NCBI RefSeq assembly: GCF_041956535.1
Contig: NW_027192195.1
Span: 1,265,809 to 1,318,587, forward strand
DNA length: 52,779 nucleotides
Direction of reading: 5' to 3'
DNA from: Calcarisporiella thermophila CBS 279.70
Lineage: Eukaryota; Fungi; Calcarisporiellomycota
The position numbers and the translations under genes are program-made. Of this stretch, positions 1 through 45,500 are shown piece after piece. The notes beneath the pieces were generated by a model that saw nothing but the letters and a program-made list of their open reading frames with translations, made no database searches and had not been told where the DNA came from. Position 1 is the first letter of the stretch. Every line of letters begins with the position of its first letter.

Positions 1-693
1 TCAAAGGGGTGTAAATGCTCGCAAGTATAGATAATTATTGCTATCGCCAATATGCTAACCGTGGAATAGGTGCGTAAACATTTAATGGTGCTCTTTCAAT
101 ATCTCACAAAATCTCGCCCGGAATACACAGAGCCTGATATGGCAACCTCGTATGGCCCATCGCATTTTCTCAAGTTTAATAAAGGGGCGTCTCAAACTGC
201 TTTCGAGAACCTCAACTCACTTTCTCATATTACGTTTAAGGCTCACTCTCCCAATGCTGGCATTGTTCAACTCAACTCCGCTGACCCCTACGACGTGCCT
301 TATATCAATTTTAACTACTTTTCAGGGCAACAGGGTGAAGAGGATATTCGCGATATTTCGAATCATATCAGAATGCTTCGAGAACAAGCACATATTAAGT
401 TATTAGTCGGCTTCGATGAAACAGTTCCTGGAGCACATATTACCACTGATGAAAACCTGGCAGATTGGGTACGGAAATATGTGGGATTCGGACTGTATGC
501 TTGTTGCACCACAAAAATTGGTACTGATAATGATCCTATGGCTGTTCTGGATGGAAAACTCCGAGTACGAGGCGTCAAAAATTTACGAGTTGTTAGCGCT
601 TCATCTTTTCCTGCTATCCCCGGTTAGTAACCTGCACTTTTTACTCATATGATGGGGTTAAATGCAGCAGATGTAATACTGGACACTCAGTGA
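1..693 (+). pseudogene. GMC oxidoreductase (choline dehydrogenase-like) C-terminal part, disrupted; 5' end lies outside the window
   Basis: Motifs GIVQLNSADPYDVPYINFNYF, ACCTTKIG, AVLDGKLRVRGVKNLRVVSASSFPAIPG. Homology continues in frame past TAG TAA (625-630) as PALFTHMMGLNAADVILDTQ* (stop 691-693). There is another stop at 75-77 plus a frameshift, and the catalytic His position reads Tyr (GLYACC). Confidence 0.75.
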
Positions 694-2681: not shown

Positions 2682-3830
2682 TTAAAGAGGTGTAGTTGGT
2701 CCTCCACGAAGAAGAGACAAAAAGAAGCCCAATAGTGATACAATAACCCCCACAGTATCATCAAAACCACAATGAGCACTATTTGCCTTTCCCCAATAAA
2801 AGTGATCAAGTGCATTAAGTCTTTCAATGGGCACACCAGGGCTACAATTTTTGTCGTTGGCATTCAGACAGAGAATGACTTTGTTATATTCACTGTAGTA
2901 TAACTCATTACCACGGTGCTATAGTACAAAGAATAAATAAAAAATCATATTGGATTAGATTTGGGATGAATGCAGTAGATATATAACCATTTAAATTATA
3001 AATTCGGCGTACCTTGTATCCCATAAATTCTGGCGGAAGATGAACAAAAACATCCTGCTTGTTGGTTAAGCGGTAGCCAAGGATGTTGAGATTAGAAACA
3101 TAATTTGCGAAGGTGGAATCGCCAACCAGTGGCTCCTCCAAAGTAACAAGAATAATTTTGTTCAGGTCAACTTTGACATCAGCTGCGAGATAGGCAGCAT
3201 GCACGGTTGCTAGTGCTCCACCTAGCGAATGACCAACCACTTCCACGGTATAATCTGGATATTGTTTCCATTGTTTTTGGAGCAACGTGCTGATACGTTT
3301 GGCTACGACAAGGTGAGTGGCGCGAAAACCTGTAAATGAAACGTTAATTAACAATGAGTATCATCAGAAAATAAATTTGAAAGGGGTTCATATTTTTAAA
3401 TACCTTCATGAATCTTTCCTGGAACATTACCCCCTACAGGAACTAATTTCAAGTGCGCATTCGAAATCCATGTTTGGATCGAAGCCGATCCTCGGAAACC
3501 AACAATAAATGTTTTACGAAGGTCATCTCTGGCAACATATCCGGTGGCGTCTTGCGGTCCCTGTAGAGTGAAGTAATCCAAGGTGGTCGTGTTTGGGAAT
3601 CTATCGCAATAGCACCCACATTTGAATGGTTTGCCGGGTTTCAAAAATGGCGAGTGGGCATTCATAGCGAGCATGGCATACTTTTCAGCTGCCTCAATTT
3701 GATTATTTTTCAACATGGTATGGTCAACCTTTGGAATAGCTCGCAGGGAATCGGCATATGGGTTTGCGGAAGCGTCGGCATGAGTTTGTGCCAAAACGAC
3801 AACCAAGAGAAAAATCAGCACAGTGCGCAT
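2682..3830 (-). CDS. Secreted class-3 triacylglycerol lipase (Rhizomucor/Rhizopus-type), 3 exons: 3830-3404, 3329-3013, 2918-2682
   Basis: Signal peptide MRTVLIFLLVVVLAQ, FRGS, IHEGF across intron 1, GHSLGG nucleophile, QDVFVHLPP Asp and LDHFY His; GT-AG introns join in frame. Confidence 0.9.
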
Positions 3831-9015: not shown

Positions 9016-9852
9016 TCAATTTTGCTGCCCTTTTAGTATCCAAGCTTTCGAAGATTCTTCAGTTTTTTTCGCTAATTCAGGGTTGCTTGCTATCTGTTTA
9101 ATCTGATCCTTCTCTGGAACATTCAATCCTCGTTGCACGGCAGGGCGGACTTCTATGCGGTCGAGCCAAAGCTTGAGGTTGGGAAGACCATCAATCGAGA
9201 CTCCCGCCCACTGATGTGATCGGATCCTAAAGAAATAGACGGTATTTAGAGACCATTAAATTTACTTGATTAGAGTATAAAGTACTAACCATGTGAAATT
9301 CGCAATATCTGCCAAAGAAAACTGTCCTGCTGCAAGCCATTCTCTTCCTTGCGAAAGATGTTTCTCGATAACTTCATATAGTCGCCTTGTCTCTTTTTGG
9401 TATCTCTTTATTCCATACTCGATTTTCTCGGGCGAATATCTATAAAAGTGACTGGCTTGACCTTGCATCGGACCCACTCCTCCCATCTGGAACATAAGCC
9501 ATTGCAAGACCTCAGAGCGGGCGCTAGGATCTTTAGGGTAGAGCTTGCCATTTGGATCGTAATGCTCACAAAGGTAAATCATAATGGCGCCTGATTCGAA
9601 AACGTTAAAGTTATCCCTTGAGTGATCGGTCAGAGCAGGTATGCGACCATTCGGATTTATCTTGGTGAACCACTCTGACTTTTGTTCATTTTGAGCAAAA
9701 GAGATGGATTTTACATTATAAGGCAGATCGAGTTCTTCTAGAGTAATGGATGCTTTATGCCCATTAGGGGTTGCAGCCGTGTAGAGAGTCAGGTTCGGAA
9801 TGGCCATGGCTGATTTCAAATGCTTGGAGAGTAAGTTTAAACGATTCAACAT
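9016..9852 (-). CDS. Glutathione S-transferase, Nu/Ure2p-like class (YfcG/YghU-like), 2 exons: 9852-9290, 9226-9016
   Basis: TPNG motif, [31 protein letters not shown] and FSLADIA. Exon 2 continues [38 protein letters not shown] after a GTTAGT...TAG intron. Confidence 0.92.
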
Positions 9853-22720: not shown

Positions 22721-23329
22721 TAAATTTTAAGTACAGCGCTAACCATTGATGGGCAATGATCCAAGGGTTTTCATTTGGAAGGTTTGAATATATTATCATT
22801 GCAGGAAAAACGGATGAAAAAATAATCAACGATGTAATTAACAACGTTCAAACCTCGTAGAAAAAAAATACTCCCTTACCCCCCCTACAAGGGATCAAAA
22901 TTAGAACCAAAACACTGAAACGAGCAATTAAGATAATTCTCGCGTCGCAACTCTTCGCTACATCAACACAGATCTCCTCCCCCTATTGAATAGAAGAGTA
23001 GGAAAAGAATCTATTATTTGCACGGAGTCTAGTCTTTTAAATATGACATAATATCTAACTACCTAATATCGAGTAAAAGTTAAGGAGAGGGATGGGGGAG
23101 GAGAGGGGAGAGTGCAGGTATTACTGTAACATGGGCATGTAAAGAGCGAAAAAAGAGAATGAAATTAAAAGAATTGATCCGATTTGGAGGATTCGTCCTC
23201 CTTTTCTATTAGGAAGGTGTGCGCGGTGACTAAGGATTCTCGGTCCGTTTCCCCTCCTTGGGTGCTGTCGAACTTCCTTCCGACGGTAAAGTAGTACTCG
23301 AAGTATGGCAAGACTCATTTGCCCGCGCT

Positions 23330-23975
23330 CAGCCTGCTTTTGACGGCGGTTAAATCCAGGAATGTGCCCAGCACTTTCACGAATTTAACTAGCGCCCCCC
23401 AAAATTGCAGCCATCACGCCAATTGCCACGGTGCGATGCGGTCGCCCCAGCAGTCAATCGGGACACTCCGATGCGCGGTGGGGATAGTTTCGAGGCTCTC
23501 CTAGAGGATATACCCGGACCTTCTCTCGATGCCGAGGTCGAAATAGCGCGATTTCAACGCAATGAGCACGGGGGGTGGGGGGGGGGTGATGACATTCCTT
23601 GCTCTCCTCAGCTCCTTATCTGCCTCTACCAGCTCAACATAGTCACCCGTCTTGGTAACACGCTGGAGCTTGTGCATGACACAAGTCTGCTGTGTGGTGT
23701 TGTAGTCCAGGCCCATTCCCCGCTGATAGACAAATGACGAAGGTGTCATCAGCGAATGGAAGCTGGTTGAGAGCATTAGTGGCGACCTATTGCACGTTGG
23801 GAGGAACAAGCGGCACCGTCTTCCCTCCCTTGCTTTTGCCCTTGATATTGACATCGTGCTTGCGGCCGTCAGAGGCAGGTACCTCTGGCTCACGTCCAAT
23901 CCCACGAATTCGCATTGGGAAAAGTGCATCGCCATTTCATGTATCCAGAATCCGGCCGCGCAGCCTAACATTTTT
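23330..23975 (-). pseudogene. Class I SAM-dependent methyltransferase (LaeA-like/Methyltransf_25) pseudogene fragment
   Basis: LGCAAGFWIHEMAMHFSQCEFVGLDVS, then PPNVQ*...NALNQLPFADDTF in another frame, and LQRVTKTGDYVELVE; frameshifts and a stop. Confidence 0.7.
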
Positions 23976-24149
23976 TTTAAACGCCGTATTAATATTTCTA
24001 TTCTGGCATACAGTAAACTATAGTCGAGTGTCGATTATTGTATCACTTGTTACCTAAGTTTTACCCATACCTCTCTGAAAGGAGCCTCTTTGTCTTGCTG
24101 GATCGCCGTCTACAGCTTGGATCTCATAGTCCTTTGAATCTCGTGACCA

Positions 24150-24460
24150 AATTGTTTCTCATTTGAGATTGAGCTCGGGGTGACATTGTTCCACACGATT
24201 TTCAATCTTGAAAGATGTCTGATTCAAAAGGTTATGTGGTGCGCAATCATGGCAGATTCCGCTTTGTGACAGTGTACTCTTAGGTCGGTTCAAATAGTCT
24301 TCTCTCTCGACTATTGATGCATTTGTTTTCCCTCTATCTTCGAAACGATAGAGTCTACCCTATGCCATAGCTATACAATTGCCATGGAGTCGAAGTAGAT
24401 GTGGGTTGTTGTCTCAGGAGTGGCCGAGTTGCATCTTTTGCAGGTGTTTGGCTCGCTTAC
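24150..24460 (-). mobile_element. Non-LTR (L1/Tx1-like) retrotransposon ORF2 3' remnant
   Basis: Minus-strand CKRCNSATPETTTHIYFDS...*LW resembles the zf-RVT CxxC-ET-H-F-C-W motif. Confidence 0.5.
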
Positions 24461-26347
24461 TGGTGATTATTCTTGTCACTAGTTAGGGTTAAATATTAAA
24501 TATCATAATCACCTTGATTACTTCTTTATATCCATTAGGATATCCAGCTTGTTAATTTCTGAAACTGAATTCCAGATTGTTCTGATGTCGACGTTCCGTC
24601 CTAAACGAGTTGATCTCAACTATACTATGGGCAGGAGTGCTCGATTCTCTTGACATGAATGCCGATGTTCACGGAAATTCCTACTTTCGTGAAATAAGAG
24701 TTGCAAAGAATCTACCCATCGATATGTCATGGCGCACTTCCTGGGTATTCTATTCAGGAAAATGCAAGGATTGTGAAGTCAATGGCAAAAGCGAATAAAA
24801 CGGTGTCCAACGAATCCCCCAATCTCTCCACCCTCCTGCCACGCTTCATGCGCGCACGCTCGATGCGCACTTGGCTAGCTCTGACATTCCCCCAGCTCCA
24901 GCCACTGACCGAACCGAGATTGCTAGTGAGATCCAACGGCGCCCCCTTGTCTTTCGGTAAGAGCGAGGCAAATGCAGTTGAATCTGCGCCCGAACCAACC
25001 GACACCTCCTAGAAGCAACGAGGAAGTCAAACTGCGAGGTTGCAAGAATGATTGACGGAAGAAAATTCGCCCGTTAGAGTGACTACGGTGACGTGTGGCC
25101 TGAGCATGAATCCAGGCTAAGCTTAAGTCACGCTTATGCTTGAAAAGATTTGGGCAAACATACAGAGAGATGCAACCTTATTTCCTACTAAGGTTTTTTC
25201 GGGACTCGGGGCCCTAACAACCTCGCTAACATTTTGGGAAAAAAGATTTCCAAGATCCGAAGCTTTGCGCAATTCAGAAAGTTTGCAACCCTCGGAGCCT
25301 CCCGAAACTCAAGCTTACCGCTAGTGAGCACCCCCCTCTCCGCCAATTCAACCCCCGCCTCCCTATTTCCAAATCGCCTCATATTAACATCCCCCTTCTT
25401 GGGGGCAAATTAATTGTGGGATTTCAGACTCCGCATGAAACCTCTACTCCGCGAAATTATCCCGCCTTGCTCCATTCCGCGTTGAAATGCTTACGTTTGG
25501 TTCTTATCTGCACCGCTTGCAATGCCTCAAGCGCTTTGTGACTTAGTTCGGAGAGAATGGCGCAGAGTTGAAGATACAACACGTGGATAGAATAGTACAT
25601 CGCTTTAAGAAAATCGCAAAGGCGCTGACCCTTCTCTTATATTTCGAGGGTGCATCATTCCCAAGCGAAATGACTATGCACATTGGATCCTGGAGAGATA
25701 TGGTTCAAGTTTGTAGCAGAAAATATTAGGCGATTATTTAGTGAGACGGCTCAGTTAATATGCTTTGGGCACGGGCGAGGTGCTTTTCCAGAACGATAGG
25801 TAAATAAATCTCATCGCGCGAAGTCCAGTTACATGGCTCAAAAGCCAGTCGAACTCCCTGCTAGAATTGGTATCTCGTTCTCCTGATTTGAATCCTATTT
25901 AACTCGTGCAGAGTGAGTTGAATGCAACAGCAAACCAATATCTAGCAAGGCCGTAATCCGATCCAACCCAGACACTCTGGAGTATTTCGCAAAGAAGAAC
26001 AGGAGAAGTAGAATCATTAATGTTCGCCAAATAATAGATACTCCTCCAGAGAATGTATAATATGCTATACAGGATCGATATGTTTATGCATAATACTGAA
26101 ATATTGTTTTTATAAAGTACATGTTATTAAATTGTCGGAGCCTGAATTATCAACTGAATATAATGCATTGATCCCAAGAAAAAGGAATCTTGCGAGTTCA
26201 TGCAGGTAGTTGGACCAGACATGGATGGAGATATTTGCTGAATGTAGCGCTACTCATTGTAGATTTATTGGGAGATACAATACAAAAAAAATGAATAATA
26301 AAAAACATGGGCTCAACTACGGGAGGCACTCTACACTGCCCAATGGC

Positions 26348-27088
26348 TCATTTAGACTTTTGGTGATGCTGAGTCTTTAGGAAGAAACTCATCGCTTCAT
26401 GAAGCTTACAACAAGATTGTATGGCCAAAACAAGGGGAATAACGATCCAAAAAGAGTTAAGGAATATAAAGTAAAAATAGAAGTAATAAGGATGAGGTGT
26501 ACAGTGAGGTGATCCTTCCAAGATTGAAGTAGCGTAGTAAAGTACATCTCCGTAAATATGACATACTGAAACTACGAGTTGGACAATATGATGGTATGGA
26601 AGGTTCTTGTAAAGAGCATAGGCAGCCAGATAACACGCTGGCCCATCAAAATGCTAGTTGGAACAAATGTCTTTAATTAAGATATTAATCAGGATAAGGG
26701 TATTAAAGGACAGACTTACAGCCGTAATAAACTCCATCACTACTATAAACATGTCGCTAGATAGGTATCGTGAATCACTTTTGGCATATTCTTTCCATAA
26801 CTGTGCGATCACGAACTGGTTCCCAGCAATGTTGGAATGATTCCAGCTAAAATAGCCCTCCATTACAATATGAATGGTGCCACTGATGATAAACCATATA
26901 AAGGTGAATTTCTCCATGTGAGAGATGTTCTTCCTCGTACCGATGGCTGCATTTGCAGCAAGAGTCACAAGCGCAACCATGCCAAAGAATATTGCTAGGA
27001 TTTTTTCCAATGGCATTGTGGATGCAACATAATGAGGCAGATCAAGATCGCGAGGGTAGTAGGGATGGGAGACATTAGTTAGCGACAT
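26348..27088 (-). CDS. EBP: EBP-family sterol delta8-delta7 isomerase, 224 aa, 2 exons: 27088-26720, 26653-26348
   Basis: HPYYP, WFIISGTIHIVMEG, QLWKEYAKSDSRY, MEFITA|HFDGP, IYGDVLYY, YFYFYFIFLNSFWIVIP; phase-0 GTAAGT...TAG intron. Confidence 0.93.
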
Positions 27089-27397
27089 ATTATTTGAGGT
27101 AGTTTTAAACTATTTATGGAAAAAGAGAAAATACAAGTAGGGGTTGCTTTCTCTCTACTTGAGTATTATATACAACTGGAGAAGGCTTTGGAAGTAGTCA
27201 TAAAGAGTGCAAATTTCTCATACGATCATAAATCCTTCCAATTAGCTTTGAGTGGTATTTAAAGTTTTCAAATCAATTCATCAAAAACTTTAAAGTACTA
27301 CTCCATATATTTTTTGAAAAACTATATAAGCTTCTCGAGATGTTCAGATGCAAAATTCTTCCAATGTCTAATTACCAACCATTGAATATTATTATAA
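27089..27397. promoter_or_regulatory. Bidirectional promoter shared by EBP and ERG24
   Basis: 309-bp gap between divergent ATGs. TATA-like boxes near both ends (about 27165 minus, about 27323 plus), an SRE-like CTCATACGAT at 27217-27226 and an inverted repeat at 27250-27303. Confidence 0.55.
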
Positions 27398-28931
27398 ATG
27401 TCCTCTCGTGATCTGAATCCCAAAACACAGCATTACGAATTTGGTGGTCCTCTCGGGACCATTCTTGTAATGCTGAGTAGCTCTTCAATCGTCTATTTTC
27501 TGTTCTTGACATGCAACGAAAAACAAGGTTGCTCCATTGATCCTTCCTCATTGCGTCAAGCCTGGCATAATTTTCAATGGCGAAATATTTTCGATTGGAA
27601 TGTGACAATCTTGTATCTGCTATGGGTCTCCTTTCAGGCTATTCTCTATTATATTGCTCCTGGGAAGACTGGTCATGGACCATTATTACGCGATGGGTCC
27701 AAATTGATTTATCCTATTAACGGTGCGTCCACTTTGTTAATGATATTTAAGCTCTAACTTCAATGTATGCTATTTAAATAGGGCTTAGCGCGTTTATTAT
27801 CACTATGATGACGGCAGCTGCGACTTATTTTATTTGGGGCATCTATCCCTTTATATATGTATACGATCATTTTATTCAGTTTGCTACCGCTGCGTACCTT
27901 CTTTCAAATGTGCAAGCAGTATTCCTCTATTTATATTCATTCCGCCCGGGAACATTATTTAATTTAATCGGAAATACAGGATCCCCTCTCTATGACGTAT
28001 GTATTTAATAATCAATATTTTGGCATAAGCAACCATTAACTTATATCGTTAAATAAGTTTTTTATCGGACGTCCACTCAACCCTCGCATTGGATCTTTCG
28101 ACCTCAAGTTTTTCTGTGAGCTTCGCCCTGGTATGATTGGTTGGGTGGTGTTGAATTTATGCACGGCGGCCAAGCAGTTTCAGCTACAAGGCCAAATTAC
28201 ACACTCGATGTTAGCTGTAGTTCTTTTCGAAGCAATATACGTGGTTGACGTTCTCGTTAATGAGGTCAGTGAGGCATCTAATGTGATTTGGGATTTGACC
28301 TCTGGCTTAAATATCATCCAATATTTCAGGAAGCACTATTAATGTCCAATGACATTACATCCGAAGGCTTTGGATGGATGCTGTCATTTGGAGATTTGTG
28401 TTGGGTCCCCTTCACGTATTCTCTTCAGGCACGATACCTTGCTTTCCACCCAATTCAACTCAGTCCATTGGCATTGTCTCTCATTTCAATCTTGTTTTTC
28501 GCTTCATATGCCGTGTTCCGCCTATCTAACACGGAAAAAAACGCCTTCCGTGCTAACCCTGATAACCCTGCTTTAAAGCGTAAATCTCTAGAGCAGACTA
28601 TTCATAACTATATTGGATGATGACTGATAGCTTACTTCTATTAACAGATTTAAAATTTATTGAAACCGAAGCCGGAAGCAAATTACTAATAAGTGGGTGG
28701 TGGGGCGTGGCTCGACATATTAACTATACCACCGATTGGCTGGTTGGTCTGGCATGGTGCCTATGCACTGGTTTTGATGCAACGATCCCCTACTTCTATG
28801 CGATCTATTTTGGTCTGCTACTTCTCTACCGGAACGAGAGGGACGAACATAAATGCCAACTAAAATATAAGAAAGATTGGGACCGTTATCGTAAATTAGT
28901 GCCATACAAGTTAATACCTGGCATTTACTAA
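27398..28931 (+). CDS. ERG24: Sterol C14-reductase (ERG24/LBR family), divergent paralogue, 426 aa, 5 exons: 27398-27722, 27782-27996, 28058-28264, 28330-28579, 28648-28931
   Basis: LNPKTQHYEFGGPLG, GNTGSPLYD|FFIGRPLNPRIGSFDLKFFCELRPGMIGW, GFGWMLSFGDLCWVPFTYSLQARYL, LLISGWWGVARHINY, KYKKDWDRY...VPYKLIPGIY. All introns are GT-AG and in phase (1281 nt spliced). Confidence 0.93.
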
Positions 28932-30112
28932 AATGATATAAATTGTATTAAAATATAAAATATAATTTTGAAGATTAAATCATTTACTCTATACTCTGCA
29001 AAAAGCTCTCATTGGTAAAAATGGCAGTATGCGCTTTAGAGATTTTTCGAAAATAAAAAAAAAATTTTTAAGTTAAGCCCAAAACTGATATATAGTACAT
29101 GAACTCTGGCCAGATTGCCCAAAATCTACCAAAGATCGATACGTCAAAAATGCAAATTCGGCCGTAACTTAAAGCACCCAATAATGAGTAAAAATAGTAA
29201 GTCTCAAATGTGTAGTTAAATAGAACCAATTTAAACACATAAATATATAATCCACCGGATCTAAGTTGAATCCCATAAAATATAGAGCTAAATGATCATG
29301 AAAGATTTCTAGACTTAAATTATATACTGTATATACTACTTTCTAGTCCACCCTGTCGAGAGAAATGTATAAAAATTAGCATTAACCGCCGCATAAATTT
29401 CTCCTTTTTATACCACTCCCCACACTTATCCACTGCTTCTACGCCAAAAAAACGCTTCGAGCTACGCTTTTCGAAACCCCTCAGACCATATGTAAATTAT
29501 CCTTGTACCAATCCTCCTCCTGGTACACTGATACCAACATGAGATCTTCCTGATATTTATGATGGAAATAAAATTACACCGGCCAAAGATCTAGTGGGTA
29601 AAGATGTTTAGATTTGATCATCCAAAACAGCTATTCATATCGAATGATTGAATGATTGAACAAGATGGAGAGTCTAGTATTCATAAGACATACTCGCCTC
29701 CTCTTCAGCATAGCAATTTTTTTCTTAGTGGATTATAGCTAATAAAAACCATAGAGCAATCTTCAAGTGTAAAGTGTTACAGTATATACATACAAAAGAG
29801 CGAGTATAACTAAAGGATTCAAATATGCAAATCAGCACATGATAACCATGGGTATCTTTGTGAAGATTATCTTTTATTATTCAGCAATGCTGTAGATCGT
29901 CAGATCATTTTCTTTGATTTTTAAATTCCATTTTTTGTATTTGGTTCATTACCAAACTGCTAAGTTTATTAAACCTACCAAAAAGAAATGCTACATAGAG
30001 GTATAACTTAGACTCAGAAATTTTTATTGTTATCCAAGAGTCCTTGAAATTTTTCACAAATGGATGTATTGATTCACTTGTTATAAAAAATCGCAAATAA
30101 AATATTATTAGC

Positions 30113-31568
30113 TCAGTTAATTGAGCTATTAGCCATGACTTTAAGGCATTCCTCAATTGTGGCGATAGCGCTATCAGCTTGCTCTTTCGTTAGAATTAGT
30201 GGTGGCAGGATAGTGATTGTATTAGCAGCTCCAGGGATAACAAGCAAAAATCTCTGAAGAGCTAATTGAAGAAAGGCTTCCGAAGTGGAAAAAGATTGAT
30301 TGGGTTGGTCACAAAACTGTATGGCGATCATCATGCCTCGGCCACGTACTTCTTCAACTAAAGTGCCATAAAAAGGTTTGCACACATCCTGCAAGCTCAT
30401 CAAAAGATGATTTCCCACATCTTGAACTTTCTGGAGAAAATTATGCTCACTGAGTCGGTTGAACACATAGTGTCCTACACGACATGACAGGGGATTGCCG
30501 CCGAAAGTTGAACCGTGATCGCCTAGTACAAGATTTTATATTTAATAAAAATACAATATTTATGCCAATTTTTAATTCAATACCCATAGACACAATCTTA
30601 GCAACACGTTCGGATAGAATCACTGCACCAATGGGCAAACCATTGCCTAGAGCCTTTGCAACAGTAATAATATCCGGTGCACAATCAGCACCGTAATGCA
30701 TATGAGCCCATAATTTTCCACTCCTACCAAGACCGCACTGGAAAGGCAGATATTGAATATTAGAACAAATCTTGGGAAATTGAAAACTATTTAAATTTAC
30801 CTGGACTTCATCATATATAAGGATTGCATTTACTTCATCGCATCGCTTTCTAAGTGCCTTCAGAAATTCATATGTCGCAATATGTATACCACCACCACCT
30901 TGAATAGGCTCTACTATTACAGCACAGGTATTCTCATCGATAGTTTCAACAGCTTTTTCTACGTTATTGAATTGTAATTGTACACTGCCTGAGAGCATAG
31001 GGCGGAATGGATCACGTAACATCCGTATTTCGAGTGCACTCATCGACAATGCCCCCATCGTACTTCCATGGTAACCATCTTGAAATGACACCACTTTGTA
31101 TTTATTCTCTGCTCTAGAAGGATCTGAGGAATTGGTTATGTGCTTGGCAAATTTACGCGCCATTTTCAGGGCAGCTTCATTAGCTTCAGATCCAGAGTTT
31201 ACGAATATAACCTTACTAGGCCTGCGTAAATCGTCCTTAATAGCGGTAGAGGTTTCAGTAATGTGTTGATTGGTAGCTGAAATAAGCGATTTAGCGAGTC
31301 GTCCCGCCCACTCATTAATGTAGAAAGTTGAAGTGTGTATTAATTTACCCGCTTGGTCAGAGATAATTTGCGAGATCTCTTTGTCTGCATGACCTAGAGC
31401 ATTTACCGCAATTCCTGACATAAAATCCAGGTATTTATTGTTTTCGGCATCATAAACGTAGCAACCTCTCCCGTGAGTGAGAACAATGGGTATGGGTGGG
31501 AAAATCGGTGCTATATATTCTTGTTGAAGTTCAAAGACTTCAAGCGGATTCACAGTTGCATTATCCAT
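30113..31568 (-). CDS. Class-III PLP aminotransferase, ARG8/acetylornithine aminotransferase-like divergent paralogue, 443 aa, 3 exons: 31568-30801, 30737-30584, 30522-30113
   Basis: YLDFMSGIAVNALGH, NSGSEANEAALK, IYDEVQ|CGLGRSG, PDIITVAKALGNGLPIGA (PLP Lys), HGSTFGGNP and EVRGRGMM; 1332 nt spliced in frame. Confidence 0.92.
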
Positions 31569-32773
31569 CTTTGTATATCTAGGGAAAATGAAGATATTAG
31601 CAAAAAAAAATTAAACCAGTTTATGATATAAATATTGCCAATCTTTGACTTGCTCTTAACGTTTCTTCTAATCAATGGATAGGGGTTTAAATAAAAATGG
31701 AAACTACGGGAAAATATTACTAACCAGTCCTAATAAGCCATCTCAATAGTTTTGTGGAACAACCAAAATCTCACTCAACAGAAGCTTAATATTCGCAATA
31801 CAGACTCTGATTGTCGGTTAATTGATCCAATGAAAACCCTATTTGGTTTTGTCAAAATTTTTGGCATCCCTAAGTCGAAATAAAGACAATATAGTGAGAA
31901 AACCTTTAAAATAATCAAAAATTTGCTAAGTAAAGGTTAAATCATATTCCTTCGACTTTAGCGTGAGTTAGAAGTAAATATTAAAATCGTGCTATGTTTA
32001 AAATAGTTTTAGTGCAATTACAGTAGGTACTTGCTTTGCTCGGATTGTTTCTCCGAATCGCTTTATCCATTTCGTACTCAAAAGGCATAATGCAGAACGA
32101 GAGAAATGGGTGCATGATTTGTTACTAATATGATCGGATATTTTATCTACTATGTTAACCAGCTTTCTACAGTATATCAATTGATTAATAATATAGGGAA
32201 GGTTTGATTAAAATTACATGAGATTCGGAAATTCCCGATATGTGACAGTAGCGATTGTTGGAGGCTTTATCAATGCAGTGTAGAGGTGAGGAATCGAATA
32301 AATAAAAAAGGAAAATCTAAAAAAAGAAAAATCGTAGTACGACTAAAGTATTGGCAGAGGGAGTGGCAATATAATAGAGTTATAGTTAAGTCAAGGTTAA
32401 AATATGTATTGTTACACATGCTCTTGACTAAAACCATTAGCCTGGTCCTATTTTTCTATGTAAGGCAAATCAATGTATACCTTATAAAAACGTGTGCTGG
32501 CTAACATGATATCATCCTTTTGCTTATACGGCAAACTCCATAGTAGTTGAATTCACTAAGCCCTCTTGGCTGAAAGTTACTTGAAACTCAATCAGAGCAC
32601 TGATCCTCATTCAGTTTATTTTTTTGAAGGCATACTTTGTATATCTATTTCTTTTTACAAAATATTTTCCCGCTTCAACCATTTCTTTATAAATATCTGC
32701 TCAATTTCTCTTGTTGCTCACCTTTTCCTTTAAGCTGCTATATTGCATTATTACCGGTTAAATTTTAAGAAAC

Positions 32774-34830
<2,057 letters not shown>

Positions 34831-36749
34831 AATATGATAAATAGATGGAAATTCGTTTAAATTTCACATCAAAATTTTAGATAGTCATTCCTCTGCACCG
34901 GTATATTTCAAATATATTATTTATTTATTATAACTTTTCATACCATATTTCATGCTTGCAAGTACATGAGTAGGATTTGTCTATAATCCGTGCTTGGCGA
35001 TTATGAACCAATACGTTGAATAAACTAAGCCTAGCTTTGCGGTTTCGGCAAATTTCTATTAGTATTATAACAAGTTGAAAAATGTATGCTATTATCAAAG
35101 GCACAGTAAGGAGGAAAGGGGGAAAAAGGATGAAATTTCGGGCATTAATGGATTTTAGGAAGAGTTCGATTTCATGAAACTAACCTTGTCTACGAGTTAA
35201 GGACTCTTAATATGGGCGGATTGGGAAATTGAGGGGGCGTGGATCGAAATTGGCAGTGAAGGGATGTATTCTATTGGGATTATAGGAGAATTGAGAGTTG
35301 TCGATGGAGTTTAGGGTGTTAATGTCGTTGAAGGAGTAAAATTTTGATTATGCTGAGGGAGAGAGCAAGTGGTTGCTATCGAATGAGAGGTGAAGGCGAG
35401 TAATATTAGAGGTGGAGCAAGCGAATTAGGCTTGTTTTGAGGTGATGAAAGAGTAACTGATTAAATTTGCTCAGCCACATTACAGGTTTTCTTGGATGGA
35501 TCCAGCATTCTTGTTTATGGTCACTTAGAAGTTTGGAAAATTTTTCGAACAATTTCTTCTGTTAATCTTCGAGTTGCAGGATAAGTGAGTATATGCAACT
35601 GGCAAATCTTTCGTATTGACCACGGTTCAGAAGTGAATCCAGGACGGTATAGTGGCCATTATTCGGTTGGCTCGGGCCTATTCAGCGTTGGCTTCAATCC
35701 ACCTCGCTCACGTTGATGTTGATGAACAGGGAACTCATGAGCCCTATTGAAGGGCCGCTTGCATTCATCGCAGCTTTTCCCAAGGTCGAAGATATTGAAA
35801 TGCCATCTTACTGCCTATAACACCACATTGGGGTCTCGAAAGATGATGAGATTGTCGGCTCTGAGTGTTTCGACTGCGCGGCAGAAGTTTCTTGTGCATA
35901 ATGCTTTTCTAGTCGAGCGGTTCGTTAAGAGAGTTTGAAAACTATTATAACGCTAAAAGCGAAAAAAGACGGTGGATAATTTGGAGGGTAGAAGGGTCTC
36001 TCTGCAGCCTTGCTACGATCAGCATTTAGGACTCATGTTTTTCCTCGGTCACGTACAGGACAGTTGCTAGTAGAATATCATATAATAAATCAGTCAACCA
36101 TCAACTGCAGCTCTTCGGTGGAATATATCTCAAGACTCTGCCGTAGCAGGGTATAGTGTTGCATCACAACCGAGTAGGTAGGGTCAAGGAGTTCCACGTA
36201 TGGGAATTAATGAGAATGTACAGGTGGCAAATTGGGACACTTACCTTGCCTTGGTCGTTCGAGAGAATGTTATACTATAGAACAAGTATTCTAGATCTAG
36301 TTCTAAGTAGAGGAAACTAATGCAATTTATGGTTGCTATAGAAGGAAGGTCCGTACCTCTTTATTTTCTTACCCGACCAGGCGAAGCGAAAATATAGCCC
36401 CCTCTGGTCAAGCAATATTATGAACATTGTAACACAAACAAGCCTTGATCCCTCTTCACATAGCATTCATTTATCTTATATACAATGCTGATTTCTCCAA
36501 TGTTCACGGTCAGGGGATAAAATTTTTAAGGTTAGGCACACATTTCGTATGGATCAAGCAAATCTTTCATAATAGATATAATCAGTTATATGCCCAATTA
36601 ATGGATACAAATTTTTCAATACAATATTTTTTTTTAAAACGGGCGTTGTTTGTACAATATTTAGATAAAAATAATAATAACAATTTTTCGCAAAATTTTC
36701 TGGAAATTTAATTTATTTAGCCGATTCAATAACTGTTGTAATTGTTAAT

Positions 36750-38564
36750 TCAGTAAATGTACTGTTTGGTTTATAGTAATTGTGTTAGATAAAAAATTTT
36801 TTAATTCTGGAAAAGTGTATCGCTTACCGGTATAAGTTTATATGGAACTAACTTACAGTATTCTTCCCAAAATTTTCCGTATTTGCCACGACATCGCGTA
36901 TCGTCCCGTTTCGTGCGATGCAAAAGCAGAACTGTCATGTATATAATATAAAAGTATGCTAGAATATTGTCAAACCCGCAGGCGAGACACATTGCTAACG
37001 AAAGGAGAAGATCGCCGAAATAGTTGAAATGGCGAGCAACTCCTAGAATTACAAAGGCAAAATTAAAGATATTTTCCAACAAATTTCTCACATTTCAAAA
37101 ATCTCAATACCCCAATACCCAGAAGCTAACAGAATACTCTTGTGCTTTTTTCCGTCGCTGGTTACATATTCAGGTCTAATTATCTTTGGTTTGCGACCCC
37201 AAACGAGGCATGTTCCATCACTGCGCCTCACGATGTCTTTTTGATTATTCGCACCACGAAAAATGAGATATCCAATTACACCCAGAATAATTACAGTCCA
37301 AAAGTATAGGGGTGAGAGTTGAATCGGGTTACGAGAGAGATAATGCGACTGAAGTGGATACATGAATGGGAACCAGACCGATGTACCCCATGCCAAATAG
37401 AAGCCAAAGTGATCATGAGCAATATCTGAAAAATAAATAAGGGCAGTTAATGGTTGAATATTGAAATCAGAAGACACATATGTCGATATACCGATAGTTC
37501 GAAGGTACCAGTCCTCAAAGTAAAAAAAATCAAACGTGTATAGGGCATGCAAAAATATAACCGCAACCATTGAGTTGGAAACATAACCAAATTTTTTATA
37601 TTGTGCGGCAGCAAAACTCATATTGATAAGTGACCATGCAACAAACCCTGGGCGCCCATTATGAAACAATTTGAAATCCCATAGTTTGCCGAAGCGTGGA
37701 TTGAACTCAATTCCCATCATGAAATCATATATCACAGAGCCGGAGAATTTCCCTATAAAAATGAAGACTTTAAAAAAAGGAAAATATTTTTAAAATATCA
37801 AATAATTACGATCTTCGGGATGAGAAGGGAACAAGTGGGCCTTCACATAGGCAAAGGCACTAAGGAAATACCCGTACATAATGGTAGATAAAAGTATACC
37901 GCCCCAATAGTCATGTATTATGGAAGCTGGAAACCATCCAAGCATCATAGAACCAACAATGAAAAGTATATTGCAGAAAACCCAGATTCGGAAACCATTA
38001 AGCTACGATATATATAAGCCAAATTTATGAAATATAAATTATGCAAGAAATTTGAAGAATATATAAAAATACCTTATATGATAAAAGATATCCGGCAGGA
38101 GTTCTCTGTCCGTATCCAATATTGGCCGGCACAAAAGCGTACAAAATCCCTTGGAAAATTATCCATGATATATGGATCAGTGTTGCAGTCCAATTGAATT
38201 GAGGTAAACGGGAAGTGAAAAATTGCCTCAACGCCATTTTTGTCCAAGGTAGACTAACCAATTCAAATATAGGACCTACTAGACTGCAATGATAGTAGGT
38301 GCAAGAGGACCAGACATAGACGACCAACATTGGGCAAAAAATCAAAAGAAATAAGCAAGCGATAATAGTAAGTATTGTGACATCTAAGTCGAAATAGAAA
38401 AATAAAATCATATTGAAAAAAAATTGCAATCAATCAAAGTGGTCAACCTGAAAAAATTAAGTTGATAAGTTACCTCGGTCTCGACCCCATGTTTGACCAG
38501 TTTGGGCCTTTAGGCCTTGGTAATTATAACTAGACCTTGGTTTCTGTTGCTCCGATCTATACAT
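36750..38564 (-). CDS. DHCR7: 7-dehydrocholesterol reductase (sterol delta7-reductase) family, 465 aa, 7 exons: 38564-38474, 38383-38073, 38002-37810, 37752-37492, 37425-37111, 37042-36828, 36761-36750
   Basis: [12 protein letters not shown]|[35 protein letters not shown]|[21 protein letters not shown]|[31 protein letters not shown]|YIY*; 1398 nt spliced in frame. Confidence 0.93.
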
Positions 38565-39597
38565 AGTAAGAAAAAAATATATCAATGGACGCAAATATAT
38601 ATTGTTAATAAATACGTTGTTTAAATACAAAAAAAAAAGTTAAAACTTGGCTTAAAGTTTTAGCACTTGCGTAACCGAAAAATCTAAATAAACAATCAAG
38701 CTTTAGACTAAATTATCTATTGGATGATTTTTTATCGTGCCATTACTTGGAAGCCGCTCATTTTAAATTGTCATATATTTTATATTATCAAAGTTGCGTT
38801 CTTTATAACAGTGTTTCTCAAGCCCCAAAAGTTATGTTGGCTTTTAGATTATTTTATAAGTTAGATTCACCTACAAGTCCAATATGAAACTGGGGTAAAA
38901 TAAATACTCAGAAACGCTTGCTGAAAAATAGGATAAAAGTATCATAAGAAAAGTAATTCATTAACTGTGTTGATTATCACAAATTTGGAAAGTATTGTTC
39001 AATTGCCTCAGATTTATAAGTCATGACAATACATGCTATAAAAGCACACTTGCACCGTTTCTATTTCATACAAAATATAATTTTATACAGACATCCTTCC
39101 GTAAAATATTAAATCTATGCTAGATTTTTGGTAAATTATGAAATGAGAAAATCTATATGCCACGCCAAAATGTTCTACATCTCAGCAGAGATATTTTAGT
39201 AGACAAGTGATCCAACTTTGATTTATTGTAAATGATAAAACATCCCACAGATAAACAATAACAGTGATGAAATCAAGAGCCAGTGGAATTGAGAAAAACT
39301 TCTTTATTATGCTCTTCAACTTTTTCATAATTTGTTTGCAAATGTTATTCCGTTAGAGAGCACAAGGGAAATAGTGTCGAATTATTGCTTAAGAATAAAA
39401 TTTCATTATGGAGGTTAGCATTTTATACAAAATTGAGCTTCCATTTATATACTTATTGAATACGAACCTATTTATAAGGATATTAATGATCCAGTCCGAT
39501 ATTTTCGAGATCTTATTTAAATTCAAACTGACTTGTTTATTGCTCCTCACCTCTTTCTTGAATTCTACAAGAATTCGTGTCTCTATCAGTCCCAAAA

Positions 39598-42500
39598 CTG
39601 CTATATTGGTGCTTTCGTCCGAGTATATAAACTAATGGATCAAGCCAACGGGTCAACCAACTGGTATACATTAAGCGTGATACGGCAGCTACTCCACATA
39701 ATTTACCATAATACTGTTAACGTATTCAGTATCGCACCGCAAGCTTGAAATGAAACCTTCAAACCCTTGCGTCCTACACAGCGACTCTAATAACGCTGCA
39801 GAATCCTCTAGTAGTCGCACAGCTCCACCGCCCCCAGTGGCAATTGTTACTTCAACCTCTTCCATAGAGGGAGCTACCCCTCAAGCACTCGCTGATAGGA
39901 TTCAAAAACAGTCCGCGATAATGGAGCAGATGTTTCTCATGTTTGGCAGATTCTTGGAGAAATCACAGCCATCAAACCAGCCAGCTTCTCCAGGATTTAC
40001 CAGCCCAATTTCTGTCAACAGCGGTCAGAGTAATAGCATTTCCGAAATACATCGAACAACGCGACTCAAGCTGTAACCTCTGAGCCTATTGACTAGTCTC
40101 GGCGCCTCGAAACTTCCGATTTACCCGTTTTTAAAGGTATTGCATTGGAGGACTGGCATGTAGATCGAATGTGCAACGAAAATTAAAAGGTTCAATAAGA
40201 CCTCAGATTACGAATTCTTACTATAGTTGCCCAATATTTTGAAGCATGAAGCTCTAACACGACGGCTCACGCCACCTATCTCATTATGGGAAAAAGAATT
40301 GATATCATTTACCCTAGGTTAACCTAACCTTTGTTAGTTTTTTGTTGTTTGTTTTGTTATAGGAAAATACATTGTCCGATTTTAGGAAAAAAAAATATAT
40401 TGAGTCATTTTCGATTTCTTATTTACATATAAGCCCATTCACCTTACATGTATTTCATTGTTCCTTACCGATCATCTATTTTCATAAAAATCTTTGTCTA
40501 TCCTTCGATCTCTGCTACATCCAGTACGTAGTTTACTGATGAACTCTTGGAAAATTGTAACAGTGGAAATGACGTTCACTTCTAGTGTAGCTGGACCGAC
40601 TAGGATCATGGAAAGTAATCGTTTTCTTTTATATATATATCTATACATCCGCCTCCAACTTAATCTCCTTCATCGTTCCCGAATCACGGTCAAGCACCCA
40701 CTAGAGTAGAATGACCCGTCCTAAATCTCCAGGACTTACGCAGGGTGGCCAAGATCACCCAAACTCATAATCTTGATTTCAACTATGTGAAATTCATACT
40801 ACCGAGCCTCCTCGAGGGACGTGCTGAACAATGGTATGATGTAGACGGATATATGCAGCTTCCTCATTGTCAATCGTGAGAAGAAGTCCAAAACCTGTTC
40901 AAAGCACAATTCCGGAGCGCTTTTCCCGAGTGCTCTGCTCGAATAGAGCTTTCCCAACGAGTCTTCAAATCGGACGAGGATATTGAAGACTCATATTACC
41001 ATAAGCGTGAACTGATCGCCCGATGCTACGGTCAAAACGTCTACAACTGCACGCAAATAGGCGAGATATTAGCTGGTATTAACCAAAGACTTGCCAGACG
41101 CGTTGGAATTCAACTGATGCCTCTCCACGATCCAACGCCACCCGACTTGCTCAAAATCCTCAAAATGGCCGATGACGAACTTCCCCGAAAAATACGACAG
41201 GGATGTTTCCTTGAGAAAGAGCAACTAAAAATCTGCAGGAACAACAGACCTTGAGAGGTAACTAACGACAGCAAAAATGGTCGACCGGCTCCCTCGCGTT
41301 GCCCGAACTGTAAAAGGAACCATTGGAAGAGACAGTGTCCCGAAAACCAGGGCCACAATGATAAGAGAAACCACCAAGCTAAAAATTTTCAAGCCTGGGC
41401 AGCCGAAATCACAATGGTTTCCGCAATTTTCGTTCCGCGCCAGGCCAAACAACAAACACTCAGCCGCAAGATCATTCCGCTTTCGGCTACCTAACCCTAC
41501 TCCAGTGCTGGCATTGCAGGGATTTAGCTCCGTCGAAACTCCAGTTGGTTCAGCAAATCTCTGTTATCCTGTATGCAACGAACGGGGACAAACTACAATT
41601 CTGCCTGGACTTCCTCGTCGTAAAAAATGTCCCTCCGGGTATAATTATCGGCACGGATACAATGGCGCCTTATGCAGCAAAGGTGCTATATGAGCCTCCG
41701 ATCTTTCCTGTCAAATCCTGGACTAACATTCCGCCTTCGAAATGAGGAGAAGCAACATGCTCCGAATGTATTCAGGGCAGTAGTATCTCATTGCCAAGTC
41801 ATTCGCCCAGGATACCAAGCTCTAATTTCGGTGCGATTAACCTACCAGCAATCAGTCTTTGATACACTTCTAGAACCGGTGTGTCTGAGAGGGGGAGAAT
41901 TGCTGTACAAGCTGCGAGAACCATAGTTAAGGCCGGGAATAAACATGTACATATTCCGGTTACTAACGCCAGCAGTGCACCAATTACGCTTATGCCTGGA
42001 GAACTCGTTGCTTTGGCACATCCGTTTTCGTCCTCCACGTACGTCGTAGTTCCCGTTCAAAGGACAGAAAATACTGATACCACGGAAGAAGAATTTCATA
42101 GTCACTTCATCGAAGCCTTTTCTGCAGCCCATTTGAATCCCGAGCTGACCCTAGAACAACTAGAAGCAGTAAAGGAAAAGCTCTGGAAACACCATAAGGC
42201 TTTCTCGTTGGATGGTCGTCTTGGAAACACTAACCTCTTGCCGTTGGACATTAACACGGGGAACGCCAAACCAGTTTCTCTACCACCATATCGAGTGTCA
42301 CCACGAGAGCGTGAAGCGATTGAGAAGGAGGTCCAAGAACTTATGGCGCAAGGGATCGTCGAGGAGTCTAACTCTCCATGGGCTGCTCCGGTAATCCTTG
42401 TTCCCAAAACGGATGGTGGAATACGCTTCTGCATAGATTTCCGATGTTTGAATGCGGTTACGGTCGCAGATCGATACCCCTTACCGCGGATAGGCGATCT

Positions 42501-45500
42501 CCTCTCTCACCTTTCAGGCAAGTCATGGCTCACTTCCTTCGACGCTAACAAAGGATTCCACCAAATTCCTCTCTCCTCTGAAGACGATCATGCAAAAGCA
42601 GCATTTCGAACTTATCTGGGCCTACATTAATACTCGCGAATGCCGTTTGAGGCAAAATACAGGCCCTCAATTTTCCAACGACTAATGGATTGTCTCCTAG
42701 GAAAACAAAAGTGGGAGATGGAAGTTGTTTACAGCGGCGATCTTATCATTTCAAGCAAGATCTTTGAGGAATACCTCTCTCATTGCTTCACCATTCTCTC
42801 ACTCGTCATTAGCGGCGGCCTCACCTTCTCACTGAAGAAGTCTTATCTCTTCTTCCCGAAGCTGACAGTACTTTAGTATTCTGTTTCAGGACTCGGGATA
42901 GCAACCTTGGAAGTCAAAACGCGCGCAGTAGCTCAGTGGGTAAGGCCAAGTACCGGTAAAAAATTGCAACGATTCTTGGGCTTAGTAGTACACTACCGCA
43001 TATTCGTCAAAGTTTACACAATCATAACCAAGCCACTAACGAAGCCTTTAACCTAAGAAAAAGTACAATATTTCGATGGGGTGATGAACAGGAATCCGCG
43101 TTTAAATTGCTTAAGGAGAAGCTCTGCTCGGCACCGATCCTCACGCACCCAGATTTTTCTTGACCGTTTTGCATATACACCGATACAAGTACAATTGGAC
43201 TTGATATTATTTTCGCGTAAGAACAGGAGGATGCCGAGAGTGGGGAGTTAGTCGAAAGAGCTATCTGTTATCTTTCCCGCCAGCTCAAACCCGCCGAACA
43301 GAACTACTCAGCGACGGAATTGGAATGCTTAGCCGTAGTATGGTCCCTCACAAAGCTCCATGCTTTTCTTAATGGCTCCAAATTTCAACTCAGCCGATCA
43401 TATAGCTCTTCGATGGATCATGGATTACAGAGGACCAAAAGCCTGACTCCTACAGTGGTCTATTCACTACCGTCCAGATTGATCGAGCCAATGTTGATTC
43501 TCTCTCTCGGAAGCCATCACCAGAAGTGAATGCTGTTTCCGCTGTTGCAGTCTCAAACTTTAATCAACTAAGTACGCGCTAGCTACCGTCATGACGAGAA
43601 GTTTTCTGAGATAATCCTTATCCTCTCGATAAACACCAAAGACAAGGACGCCTGTGATAAATCCAAGCTTCATGCATTTTTCACTGAGGATGGCCTTTTA
43701 TTCCTATAGAGTTCAAGTGATGATCAGCTAAGCCAGTTGTGCATACCCAACCATGGGAATATCAGATTTTCACTACTTAAAGAAGTGCACGATACTCCGA
43801 TGTCCGCACACCCCGGTAGGATCAAGACGTTGGAACTACTTCAGAGTCGATTCTACTAGAATAAAATGTCGATCGACGTAAGGCGCTATGTATCCAGTTG
43901 CACTTCATGCCAGCGAAATAAACCCACCAACCAGAGGACCCCGGGGCTCCTCTCCTCGCTACCTATACCAACGCAGAGATGGCAAGAAGTCTCAATGGAT
44001 TTCATTACAAAACTGCCGCAGACACCTGGTGGTCACGATGCAATATGGGTAGTAGTAGATCGGTTGACCAAACGCGCGCACTTCTTCGCAATCAACGGAA
44101 CCATCTCAGCATCCCAACTCGCTCAACTCTATTTGTGCAAGTTATTTCCGCTGCACGGGATACCCAAGTGCATCGTGTCAAATAGAGATTCAAAATTCAC
44201 GTCTGCATTCTGGAAAGAACTATTTTCTACCCTAGGAACACAGCTATCGCTAAGTACCGCTCATCACCCACAAACCGATGGACAGTCGGAAAGAGTCAAC
44301 TGTTCGTTAATCGAAATGCTCCGACATTTTCTAAGTTCACGACATGACGCTTGAGTTCAATACCTGCCATTATTGAGTTTGCATAATTACTCGGTACACT
44401 CAACGACTGGAATATCGCCTTATTTTTTGGGCTTAGAATACCTGTAAGGAAATGAACTTAGCCAAGTTCAATGTCTTTAGCACCTTTGCTTAGCAAGACC
44501 TTTGTCTCATCAAAGACCAAGCAACACCCATCCGCCAAGAGCAATACAAGCACTTATCCATGAAAACCCACTTTAGCTTAGTTATACTTTTGTCCTTTTT
44601 ACATTATTTAAGGCACACGATCATTTGTCAGAATTATTTTAGGAATCACTCAATGTCACTTTTCCCTTTGTTTTCTTTAGTCAATTTCCCCTTTTGTCTT
44701 TAGAATAAACCTTTTTTTATTTTTCTTTCCAAATTCAACTGTCCTTCCTTATAATATCACCCATACATATCCTCAGCACTTTTCAGATCACACGACGAAC
44801 CATTACGAGTATAGTCCGTTGAAGATTTTCTCCAACAGTCAACGCTATTGCGCACGGCCCAAGACGCTATAATTGAAGCCCAAACACGCCAAGCCGATTT
44901 TTATGATTGCTCCCATCGTCCGGTAGAGTTCAGGGTTGGAGGTTTTTAATGCTGGTTACGGAGAACCTTCAACTACCTGTGGACGTTGACAAGACTACTA
45001 GAAACTTTCTACCGCGCTACATTGATCCTTTTCAATCACCCGGAAGATCAGCTCTTCCGCCTATACTCTCGATTTACCTTATACATTTCGCATGCATCCG
45101 ACGGTAAATATTTTCAAGTTGAAGCCCTTCATTGACACCCGAATGAATTTAGTGCACGTGAGTCATACCCTCCTCCGCCCATGTTTCGCCATAACACCGG
45201 ATTTCTGGAATACGAGGTTGAAGACATTATCCGGACACGCGGGGTGAGGAAAAGAAAAGGTATACATAGTCAAGAGGCGAGGATAGCCCGACGAAGATAA
45301 TACCTGGAAGCCCGTGGAAGATCTTCGTAATGCTCGAGACCTCGTTCGATGATTCGAAGCCACAAGGTCATTTCAATCTTCCCGACGTCTAGTTTCTAAG
45401 GAGATGATATAGCAGGACGACATACACAATAGTTGATAATACCATAGAATGATCTTCAAGTGCAGGATAACCTCTAACGCGCACAATATTTTGAGTAGAA

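Follow-up and report, generated by a model that had tools for sequence, protein, structure and literature searches.

The genome of Calcarisporiella thermophila, a thermophilic early-diverging fungus of the Mucoromycota, carries towards the end of one contig an island of five genes in which relatives of four sterol-nucleus enzymes lie together with a class-III aminotransferase. The DNA analysed here, referred to as the window (52,779 nucleotides), is C5:1265809-1318587 of an assembly of 28.2 Mb in 116 contigs, and the island covers about 12 kb at window positions 26348-38330. Taken as a whole, these diverged duplicates form a genuine cluster that is not due to chance and has so far no counterpart elsewhere. 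The genes are arranged as two head-to-head pairs (EBP/ERG24-type and aminotransferase/CYP51) and a single DHCR7 gene, and debris of dispersed repeats flanks the island on both sides and breaks it up:

26348..27088, minus strand: EBP-type sterol delta8-delta7 isomerase paralog; two exons (26348-26653 and 26720-27088), 224 amino acids
27089..27397: divergent EBP/ERG24-type intergenic region of 309 bp, delimited by the gene models; presumed bidirectional promoter
27398..28931, plus strand: delta-14 sterol reductase (ERG24/TM7SF2-type) paralog; five exons, Pfam ERG4_ERG24 (PF01222)
30113..31568, minus strand: ARG8-derived class-III aminotransferase dependent on pyridoxal phosphate (PLP); three exons, 443 amino acids; identical to the annotated protein P0001 (VTP21DRAFT_9633)
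31569..32773: divergent aminotransferase/CYP51 intergenic region of 1.2 kb, delimited by the gene models; presumed bidirectional promoter
32774..34830, plus strand: CYP51 paralog, the third in the genome and highly diverged; eight exons, 516 amino acids; identical to the annotated protein P0121 (VTP21DRAFT_9634)
35465..36409: transposon (dispersed-repeat) debris between CYP51 and DHCR7, with copies of 69-73% identity on C22, C78, C14 and C30
about 36750..38330, minus strand: DHCR7 (sterol delta-7 reductase) paralog; six exons

The models were built with a dynamic-programming spliced aligner, which, run on the window, gave the two annotated proteins without a single difference. All five genes are intact and intron-bearing, with 19 introns in total; the window EBP was modelled against a canonical copy on contig C27, and the final DHCR7 exon consists of three codons and a stop after a 66-nt intron. 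Database searches were run with single exons or stored proteins, and the spliced EBP, ERG24 and DHCR7 models served for alignments and trees alone. On the exons, Pfam recognized EBP/EXPERA, ERG4_ERG24 (two genes), Aminotran_3 and p450. The layout had been described in an earlier note made from the letters of this DNA, as five intact genes in two head-to-head pairs plus DHCR7, bounded by transposon debris, and gene models, Pfam, Protein Data Bank (PDB) searches and repeat matches all bear it out. With about 10 loci of the four sterol families in 28.2 Mb and uniform placement assumed, we estimate the probability that one copy of each falls within 12 kb at ~1e-8 to 1e-7, and chance is therefore not a plausible cause of the co-location.

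Dispersed paralogs and origin of the island

Other copies of the island genes were sought by six-frame searches of the whole genome, which revealed four ERG4_ERG24 loci, three CYP51 loci, five EXPERA loci and, on C4, a locus resembling ARG8, besides more distant class-III genes. Every island gene (5/5) has one or more paralogs on other contigs: for ARG8 on C4, for CYP51 twice on C12 (C12a and C12b), for DHCR7 on C11, for ERG24 on C22 and for EBP on C27 and C16. Modelling identified the C11 gene as a second DHCR7, the C22 gene as a second ERG24-type gene and the genes on C27 (intronless) and C16 as canonical EBPs. All five island genes are extra copies. The conserved copies are spread over six different contigs, so the island was not copied from a pre-existing block. 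A stretch of 22 kb separates the housekeeping CYP51 C12a from a distant member of the EXPERA family (C12:584195-584592 and C12:606439-607014), probably by coincidence.

Wherever outside sequences were available for comparison, namely for the aminotransferase, CYP51, DHCR7 and ERG24, divergence is greater in the window copy. In the ARG8 family the identity to other fungi is 47-63% for the C4 copy versus 38-48% for the window copy; in CYP51 it is 55-58% (Mortierellomycotina) for the paralog P0300 versus 45-47%, and in DHCR7 about 56-76% for the C11 copy versus about 51-67%. The ERG24-type figure compares the two copies of this genome with each other, not with the ERG24 of other fungi, and amounts to 50% identity between the window and C22 genes. 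Terminal branches of the window copies are 2-3.5 times as long as those of the paralogs, namely 1.65 versus 0.47 for the aminotransferase, 1.37 versus 0.61 and 0.69 for CYP51, 0.63 versus 0.21 for DHCR7 and 1.53 versus 0.66 for ERG24. The earlier note had taken the genes for recruited duplicates of the sterol pathway and had suggested looking for housekeeping copies and building gene trees. Separate housekeeping copies were found for CYP51, ERG24, EBP, DHCR7 and ARG8, and the branches of the window CYP51, DHCR7, ERG24 and aminotransferase are longer than those of their paralogs, so that this part of its interpretation holds.

Intron positions and phases are largely common to the window genes and their dispersed copies. 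This applies to both introns of the aminotransferase (2/2), to three of four in ERG24 and to the single one of EBP (1/1, with the C16 copy); the window DHCR7 has both introns of the C11 copy, and the window CYP51 has three in common with C12a and two with C12b. Shared introns speak for duplication at the DNA level inside the lineage and against retrocopies or foreign DNA, and the trees put all copies among early-diverging fungal sequences. Gene structure thus points to an origin of the island genes by DNA-level duplication within the fungal lineage. Horizontal transfer of a ready-made block was considered and rejected on both grounds, the shared introns and the fungal placement in the trees. 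The window CYP51 has seven introns, including positions that are kept separately in the two housekeeping CYP51s, as if an older gene structure rich in introns had survived in it.

The four sterol enzymes

Large sets of homologs were aligned, and conservation was assessed at the columns where 95% or more of the sequences agree. In a PDB search with the P450 exon, the top 55 of the 60 matches listed were CYP51, and the full protein matches 120 named lanosterol 14-demethylases at 39-48% identity. With its Pfam p450 domain and intact haem-thiolate and GQHTS-type helix-I motifs the protein belongs to the family, and it retains 76 of 83 near-invariant columns, similar to its paralog C12a. The non-conservative changes sit in the F-G/access-channel motif (YHDLD-GF-PINF type) and include D216G and F219V.

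The best PDB match of the ERG24-type gene is the delta-14 reductase 9L5R; its features place it in the delta-14 reductase subgroup, and in the tree it groups with the C22 gene, against the DHCR7s, with 100% support. It retains 57 of the 64 columns conserved across the family, and one of the changes affects the Glu of the ELNPR motif. The PDB search with a DHCR7 exon returned delta-14 sterol reductases as matches. The protein is 59-63% identical to named DHCR7s of Mucoromycota (Jimgerdemannia), Glomeromycota (Paraglomus) and chytrids, falls within the clade of early-diverging fungal DHCR7s, has the features of a DHCR7 and retains 67 of 69 conserved columns. An apparently lost Asp of a WGD motif in DHCR7 was rejected as a significant change, the position not being conserved (26 D, 11 S and 3 G among 42 homologs). 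Both EBP exons match human EBP 6OHT (E 3e-21 and 2e-17), and the gene has the features of an EBP. It equals human EBP at the equivalents of His76, Glu80, Glu122, Thr126, Asn193 and Trp196, which we take to be the catalytic set of the human enzyme. Judged by these residues and columns, the four sterol paralogs keep their catalytic cores.

The whole-genome search detected neither an ERG2-type isomerase (PF04622) nor an ERG4-type reductase. Canonical EBP is encoded three times in the genome, DHCR7 twice and sterol methyltransferase at two loci. Since the ERG2- and ERG4-type genes are missing from the search results, the fungus appears to run a nucleus pathway of the EBP and DHCR7 type, as animals and plants do, and the island appears to duplicate four of the fungus's own steps.

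Such a set of paralogs might serve as drug-insensitive spare targets that sustain sterol synthesis in the presence of amine- or azole-type inhibitors, released by competitors in compost or made by the fungus's own neighbouring nonribosomal peptide synthetase (NRPS); the aminotransferase would then be unrelated or detoxifying. Working replacement targets would require the four catalytic cores that are kept here, the CYP51 changes are concentrated in the access-channel motif, and CYP51 paralogs that confer self-resistance are a known device of fungal clusters. Moreover, morpholines and azasterols classically hit three of the four enzymes together (for the delta-14 reductase see PMC7179204). This explanation leaves unaccounted for a deeply remodelled ARG8 copy that shares a divergent promoter region with CYP51, and we consider it unlikely, though not far-fetched. 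The distance to the NRPS, which also bears on it, is described below with the surroundings of the island.

The aminotransferase

Acetylornithine aminotransferases (AcOATs) are the best PDB matches of the aminotransferase (E 5e-96), and its nearest relatives are ARG8/ArgD and not GABA-T. In an alignment to AcOAT structures it keeps the Lys of the Schiff base and the Asp (DEVQ) that binds the cofactor. Across 111 fungal ARG8s, conservation reaches 95% or more at 111 alignment columns; the window copy deviates at 20 of these 111, compared to a single one (1/111) in the C4 copy. Alignment to the Thermotoga AcOAT reveals the replacements R169S, E225G and R411T in the motifs FHGR, EPIQGE and R-x-PPL. 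The three positions form an Arg/Glu/Arg triad that is invariant in 110-111 of the 111 fungal ARG8s, in place of which the window copy has Ser, Gly and Thr. We take the triad to correspond to R180, E235 and R413 of human ornithine aminotransferase, which bind the carboxylates of the substrate and of 2-oxoglutarate.

Ahead of its first core motif the window copy has just 45 residues, compared to a median of 90 in 108 fungal ARG8s, and the mitochondrial presequence has therefore probably been lost. With the triad replaced and the extension absent, the window copy should not be filed as a working ARG8. By its residues it is still a PLP enzyme, whose pocket would have been rebuilt for a non-carboxylate substrate, and the C4 gene is, by the same comparison, the ARG8 of C. 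thermophila. The retooled transaminase that the earlier note had proposed is thus confirmed in its main features: 20 changed columns as opposed to one, and loss of both the triad and the N-terminal extension.

Genomic surroundings

No polyketide synthase, NRPS or terpene cyclase is found between 26 and 39 kb, and the island therefore lacks the internal core synthase by which a biosynthetic gene cluster is usually recognized. The nearest core synthase is a multi-module NRPS that starts ~17.7 kb past DHCR7, outside the window and beyond transposon debris. The statement of the earlier note that such genes are absent is correct inside the window and does not extend to its wider neighbourhood. On the downstream side an NRPS and an ABC transporter lie ~18 kb from the island, and on the upstream side there is an imine reductase at a distance of 24 kb. 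The features around the island are the following:

window 70-627, plus strand: C-terminal domain of a GMC oxidoreductase, which continues upstream
window 1135-2016, minus strand: gene of the imine reductase/reductive aminase family; single exon, 293 amino acids, NAD_binding_2 and RedAm-like_C domains
window 2908-3354: class-3 lipase, adjoining the GMC oxidoreductase region
window 9262-9852: glutathione S-transferase, upstream of the island
window 23157..24925: repeat debris of the upstream flank, with copies of 73-77% identity on C58, C41 and other parts of C5
window 39036..44354: repeat and retrotransposon debris of the downstream flank, with dispersed repeats at 39.0-41.8 kb
C5:1321.9-1329.3k (L040 3334-9985, L043 42-707), minus strand: NRPS ~6 kb from the contig end, with condensation, adenylation and carrier domains
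L043 6634-9527: ABC transporter, after the NRPS

NRPSs are uncommon in Mucoromycota. For the explanation by spare drug targets, a synthetase and a transporter at this distance are a favourable circumstance; weighing on the other side are the ~18 kb, including transposon debris, that separate them from the island, and the fact that no NRPS product is known to act on these four enzymes. The imine-reductase gene, 24 kb upstream, has imine reductases as its best PDB matches (E 1e-58) and could be relevant if the product were a cyclic imine. The GMC oxidoreductase family includes sterol and alcohol oxidases.

Taken together, the three repeat zones at the island are 69-89% identical to copies on other contigs. 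Open reading frames for reverse transcriptase and integrase of a retroelement of the long-terminal-repeat type lie at window 41881-44354, and many short repeat copies of the segment at window 39.4-39.6 kb are spread over at least 15 contigs. The G+C content at third codon positions (GC3) is 0.34-0.43 in the island genes, similar in their neighbours and about 0.35-0.52 across the 70-kb contig end; the dispersed housekeeping paralogs have values of 0.55-0.79, except for CYP51 C12a (0.42). The contig end is an AT-rich, transposon-rich compartment of low codon bias. Low GC3 as a mark specific to the island was rejected, the adjoining genes having the same GC3, and a subtelomeric position is not claimed, as there is no telomere repeat at the contig end.

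In such a compartment redundant copies might simply drift under relaxed selection and without any joint function, as decaying duplicates in an AT-biased contig end. The repeat debris around and inside the island, the low GC3, the long branches and the failure to find orthologs elsewhere would all fit. Decay is difficult to reconcile with five reading frames and 19 introns that are all intact, with the near-invariant catalytic columns that are overwhelmingly retained and with the very low estimate for a chance co-location of four families. The losses of the aminotransferase, too, are concentrated in one functional triad, the cofactor residues being kept. Decay appears highly improbable.

The paralogs could also be condition-specific isoenzymes, employed under heat or hypoxia or at a developmental stage and grouped for joint regulation, with the aminotransferase as a bystander that has acquired a new substrate. 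A thermophilic fungus with several sterol-gene paralogs and a nearly canonical DHCR7 copy would suit this proposal, and differently regulated CYP51 paralogs are common in fungi (PMC8546618). The isoenzyme sets of other fungi are not known to be physically clustered, however, and the low GC3 suggests low rather than bulk expression. The presence of the aminotransferase would have to be coincidence and the 2-3.5-fold acceleration in rate would be left unexplained, which makes this a quite unlikely alternative.

A candidate sterol side branch

The interpretation favoured here, to which we give about even chances, is that the island is a lineage-specific metabolic cluster in which relocated duplicates of four sterol-nucleus enzymes and of ARG8 would serve an undescribed side branch of sterol metabolism. 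The sterol duplicates are copies of the CYP51 14-demethylase, the delta-14 reductase, the EBP delta8-delta7 isomerase and the DHCR7 delta-7 reductase. The aminotransferase would have moved from the mitochondrion to the cytosol or the endoplasmic reticulum and would act on a non-carboxylate, probably lipophilic, carbonyl. A likely substrate would be a sterol ketone or aldehyde, giving an amino- or aza-sterol; a nitrogen-bearing sterol as the product is only inferred. The sterol paralogs might either process a nitrogen analogue that would not be accepted by the housekeeping enzymes or be copies that are insensitive to it.

Delta-14 reductase, delta8-7 isomerase and delta-7 reductase work through carbocation intermediates, and protonated sterol amines are classical inhibitors of these enzymes. 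Morpholines and azasterols inhibit all three jointly, and an amine can also ligate the haem of CYP51. The choice of enzymes in the island therefore fits a nitrogen-bearing sterol, because three of them share carbocation intermediates and inhibition by amines. For the delta-14 reductase, inhibition by a 15-azasterol is documented (PMC7179204).

Several observations weigh against the side branch. Loss of both carboxylate-binding Arg residues deprives the usual donors, glutamate and alanine, of an obvious binding site, and transaminase activity may have been lost altogether from the window enzyme. A gene specific to the island that would form the sterol ketone or aldehyde was not identified. The three upstream regions have no non-trivial word of at least 8 bases in common, and the candidate element ATCGTRYNA was rejected as a shared promoter element, since it occurs 6 times in the window, where 5.98 occurrences are expected. 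DHCR7 has hardly altered in the island (2 of 69 columns differ) and is only mildly diverged, which qualifies the interpretation of the earlier note. Part of the extra divergence may stem from the AT-rich, low-GC3 compartment itself, and the trees are quick maximum-likelihood searches in which the long branches are placed without support.

Comparative data likewise offer no second instance. Among 5.8 billion proteins the best non-self matches reach 47% identity for the aminotransferase and 46-48% for CYP51, and a representative library (15 billion) yielded 50% at best, so that neither protein has an ortholog above ~50% in the protein databases searched. Two metagenome scans gave no relatives of P0001 or P0121. 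At the best-matching CYP51 (Dimargaris) and ARG8 (Spiromyces) loci the neighbouring genes are unrelated. The CYP51 loci of Wallemia mellicola and W. ichthyophaga, which make the azahomosterol UCA1064, have no aminotransferase or reductase neighbours. The synteny comparison that the earlier note had suggested thus revealed no conserved cluster at any of these four loci. As a whole its interpretation is partly supported: the recruitment of paralogs and the retooled transaminase stand, and the nitrogen-bearing sterol is what we infer from them.

One specific form of the side branch is a long shot: the product of the island would be an aza- or amino-sterol modified in ring D, of the A25822B/UCA1064 type. 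In this scheme the CYP51 paralog would open or oxidise the C14-C15 region of a delta-8,14 sterol, the carboxylate-blind aminotransferase would aminate the resulting aldehyde and the amine would close on the C14 carbonyl to a cyclic imine. The delta-14 reductase, EBP and DHCR7 paralogs would then reduce and isomerise the aza-analogue, or would be insensitive copies, and further steps might be added by the upstream imine reductase, the GMC oxidoreductase or the downstream NRPS. The model compound, the 15-aza-D-homosterol A25822B of Geotrichum flavo-brunneum, is identical to UCA1064-A of Wallemia, and for the azahomosterols of both fungi only unverified candidate genes are available (PMC7179204, PMC5201246). 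Its nitrogen lies next to C14, the site at which CYP51 and the delta-14 reductase act, and compounds of this type inhibit the delta-14 reductase. C. thermophila is not known as a producer, our literature search found no paper on azahomosterol biosynthesis genes or on C. thermophila secondary metabolism, and the two Wallemia loci lend the link no support. A connection of the island with the fungal azahomosterols is speculative.

Significance and comparison with known systems

If active as proposed, the island would represent the first fungal entry of nitrogen into a sterol by way of an aminotransferase recruited from primary metabolism, convergent with plant GAME12, and the first metabolic cluster made almost wholly of duplicates of core sterol-nucleus genes. 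It could open the natural amino- and aza-sterol antifungals to genetic study, and its naturally diverged set of CYP51, delta-14 reductase, EBP and DHCR7 may show routes to insensitivity towards amines and azoles. Cluster finders that rely on a core synthase would probably miss the island, and similar clusters may be overlooked in other early-diverging fungi.

The closest parallel is found in plants. GAME12/GABA-T2 of Solanum and GABAT1 of Veratrum are the sterol-aldehyde transaminases of the steroidal alkaloid pathways, and GAME12 arose by duplication of a class-III gene whose product is mitochondrial; the duplicate shed the targeting peptide, acquired an altered pocket and now carries out the amination of a sterol aldehyde (PMC11666457). 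The island enzyme likewise is a class-III PLP duplicate of a mitochondrial primary-metabolism gene that has lost its N-terminal extension and had its pocket remodelled, and it is clustered with sterol-modifying enzymes. It differs in coming from ARG8, outside the GABA-T subfamily, and in occurring in a fungus and not a plant. Its partners are duplicates of core sterol-nucleus genes, whereas GAME12 is accompanied by CYP72/CYP88 oxidases and dioxygenases. Both carboxylate-binding Arg residues are gone, and the sterol substrate of the fungal enzyme is putative. The resemblance lies in the evolutionary route only.

Two further systems share single traits with the island. The Solanum cholesterogenesis genes SSR2, SMO3/4, C5-SD2 and 7-DR2 are duplicates of phytosterol genes, and there, too, core-sterol duplicates that include a DHCR7-type reductase feed a nitrogenous steroid branch; the Solanum genes are dispersed and their product is cholesterol, whereas the fungal copies are clustered and predicted to serve a side branch. 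The restricticin and lanomycin clusters carry a CYP51 self-resistance copy and thus resemble the island in having an extra, diverged copy of a sterol drug target within a specialised-metabolism locus. In those clusters a core polyketide synthase is combined with one resistance gene, whereas the island of C. thermophila brings together four target-type paralogs with no core synthase inside.

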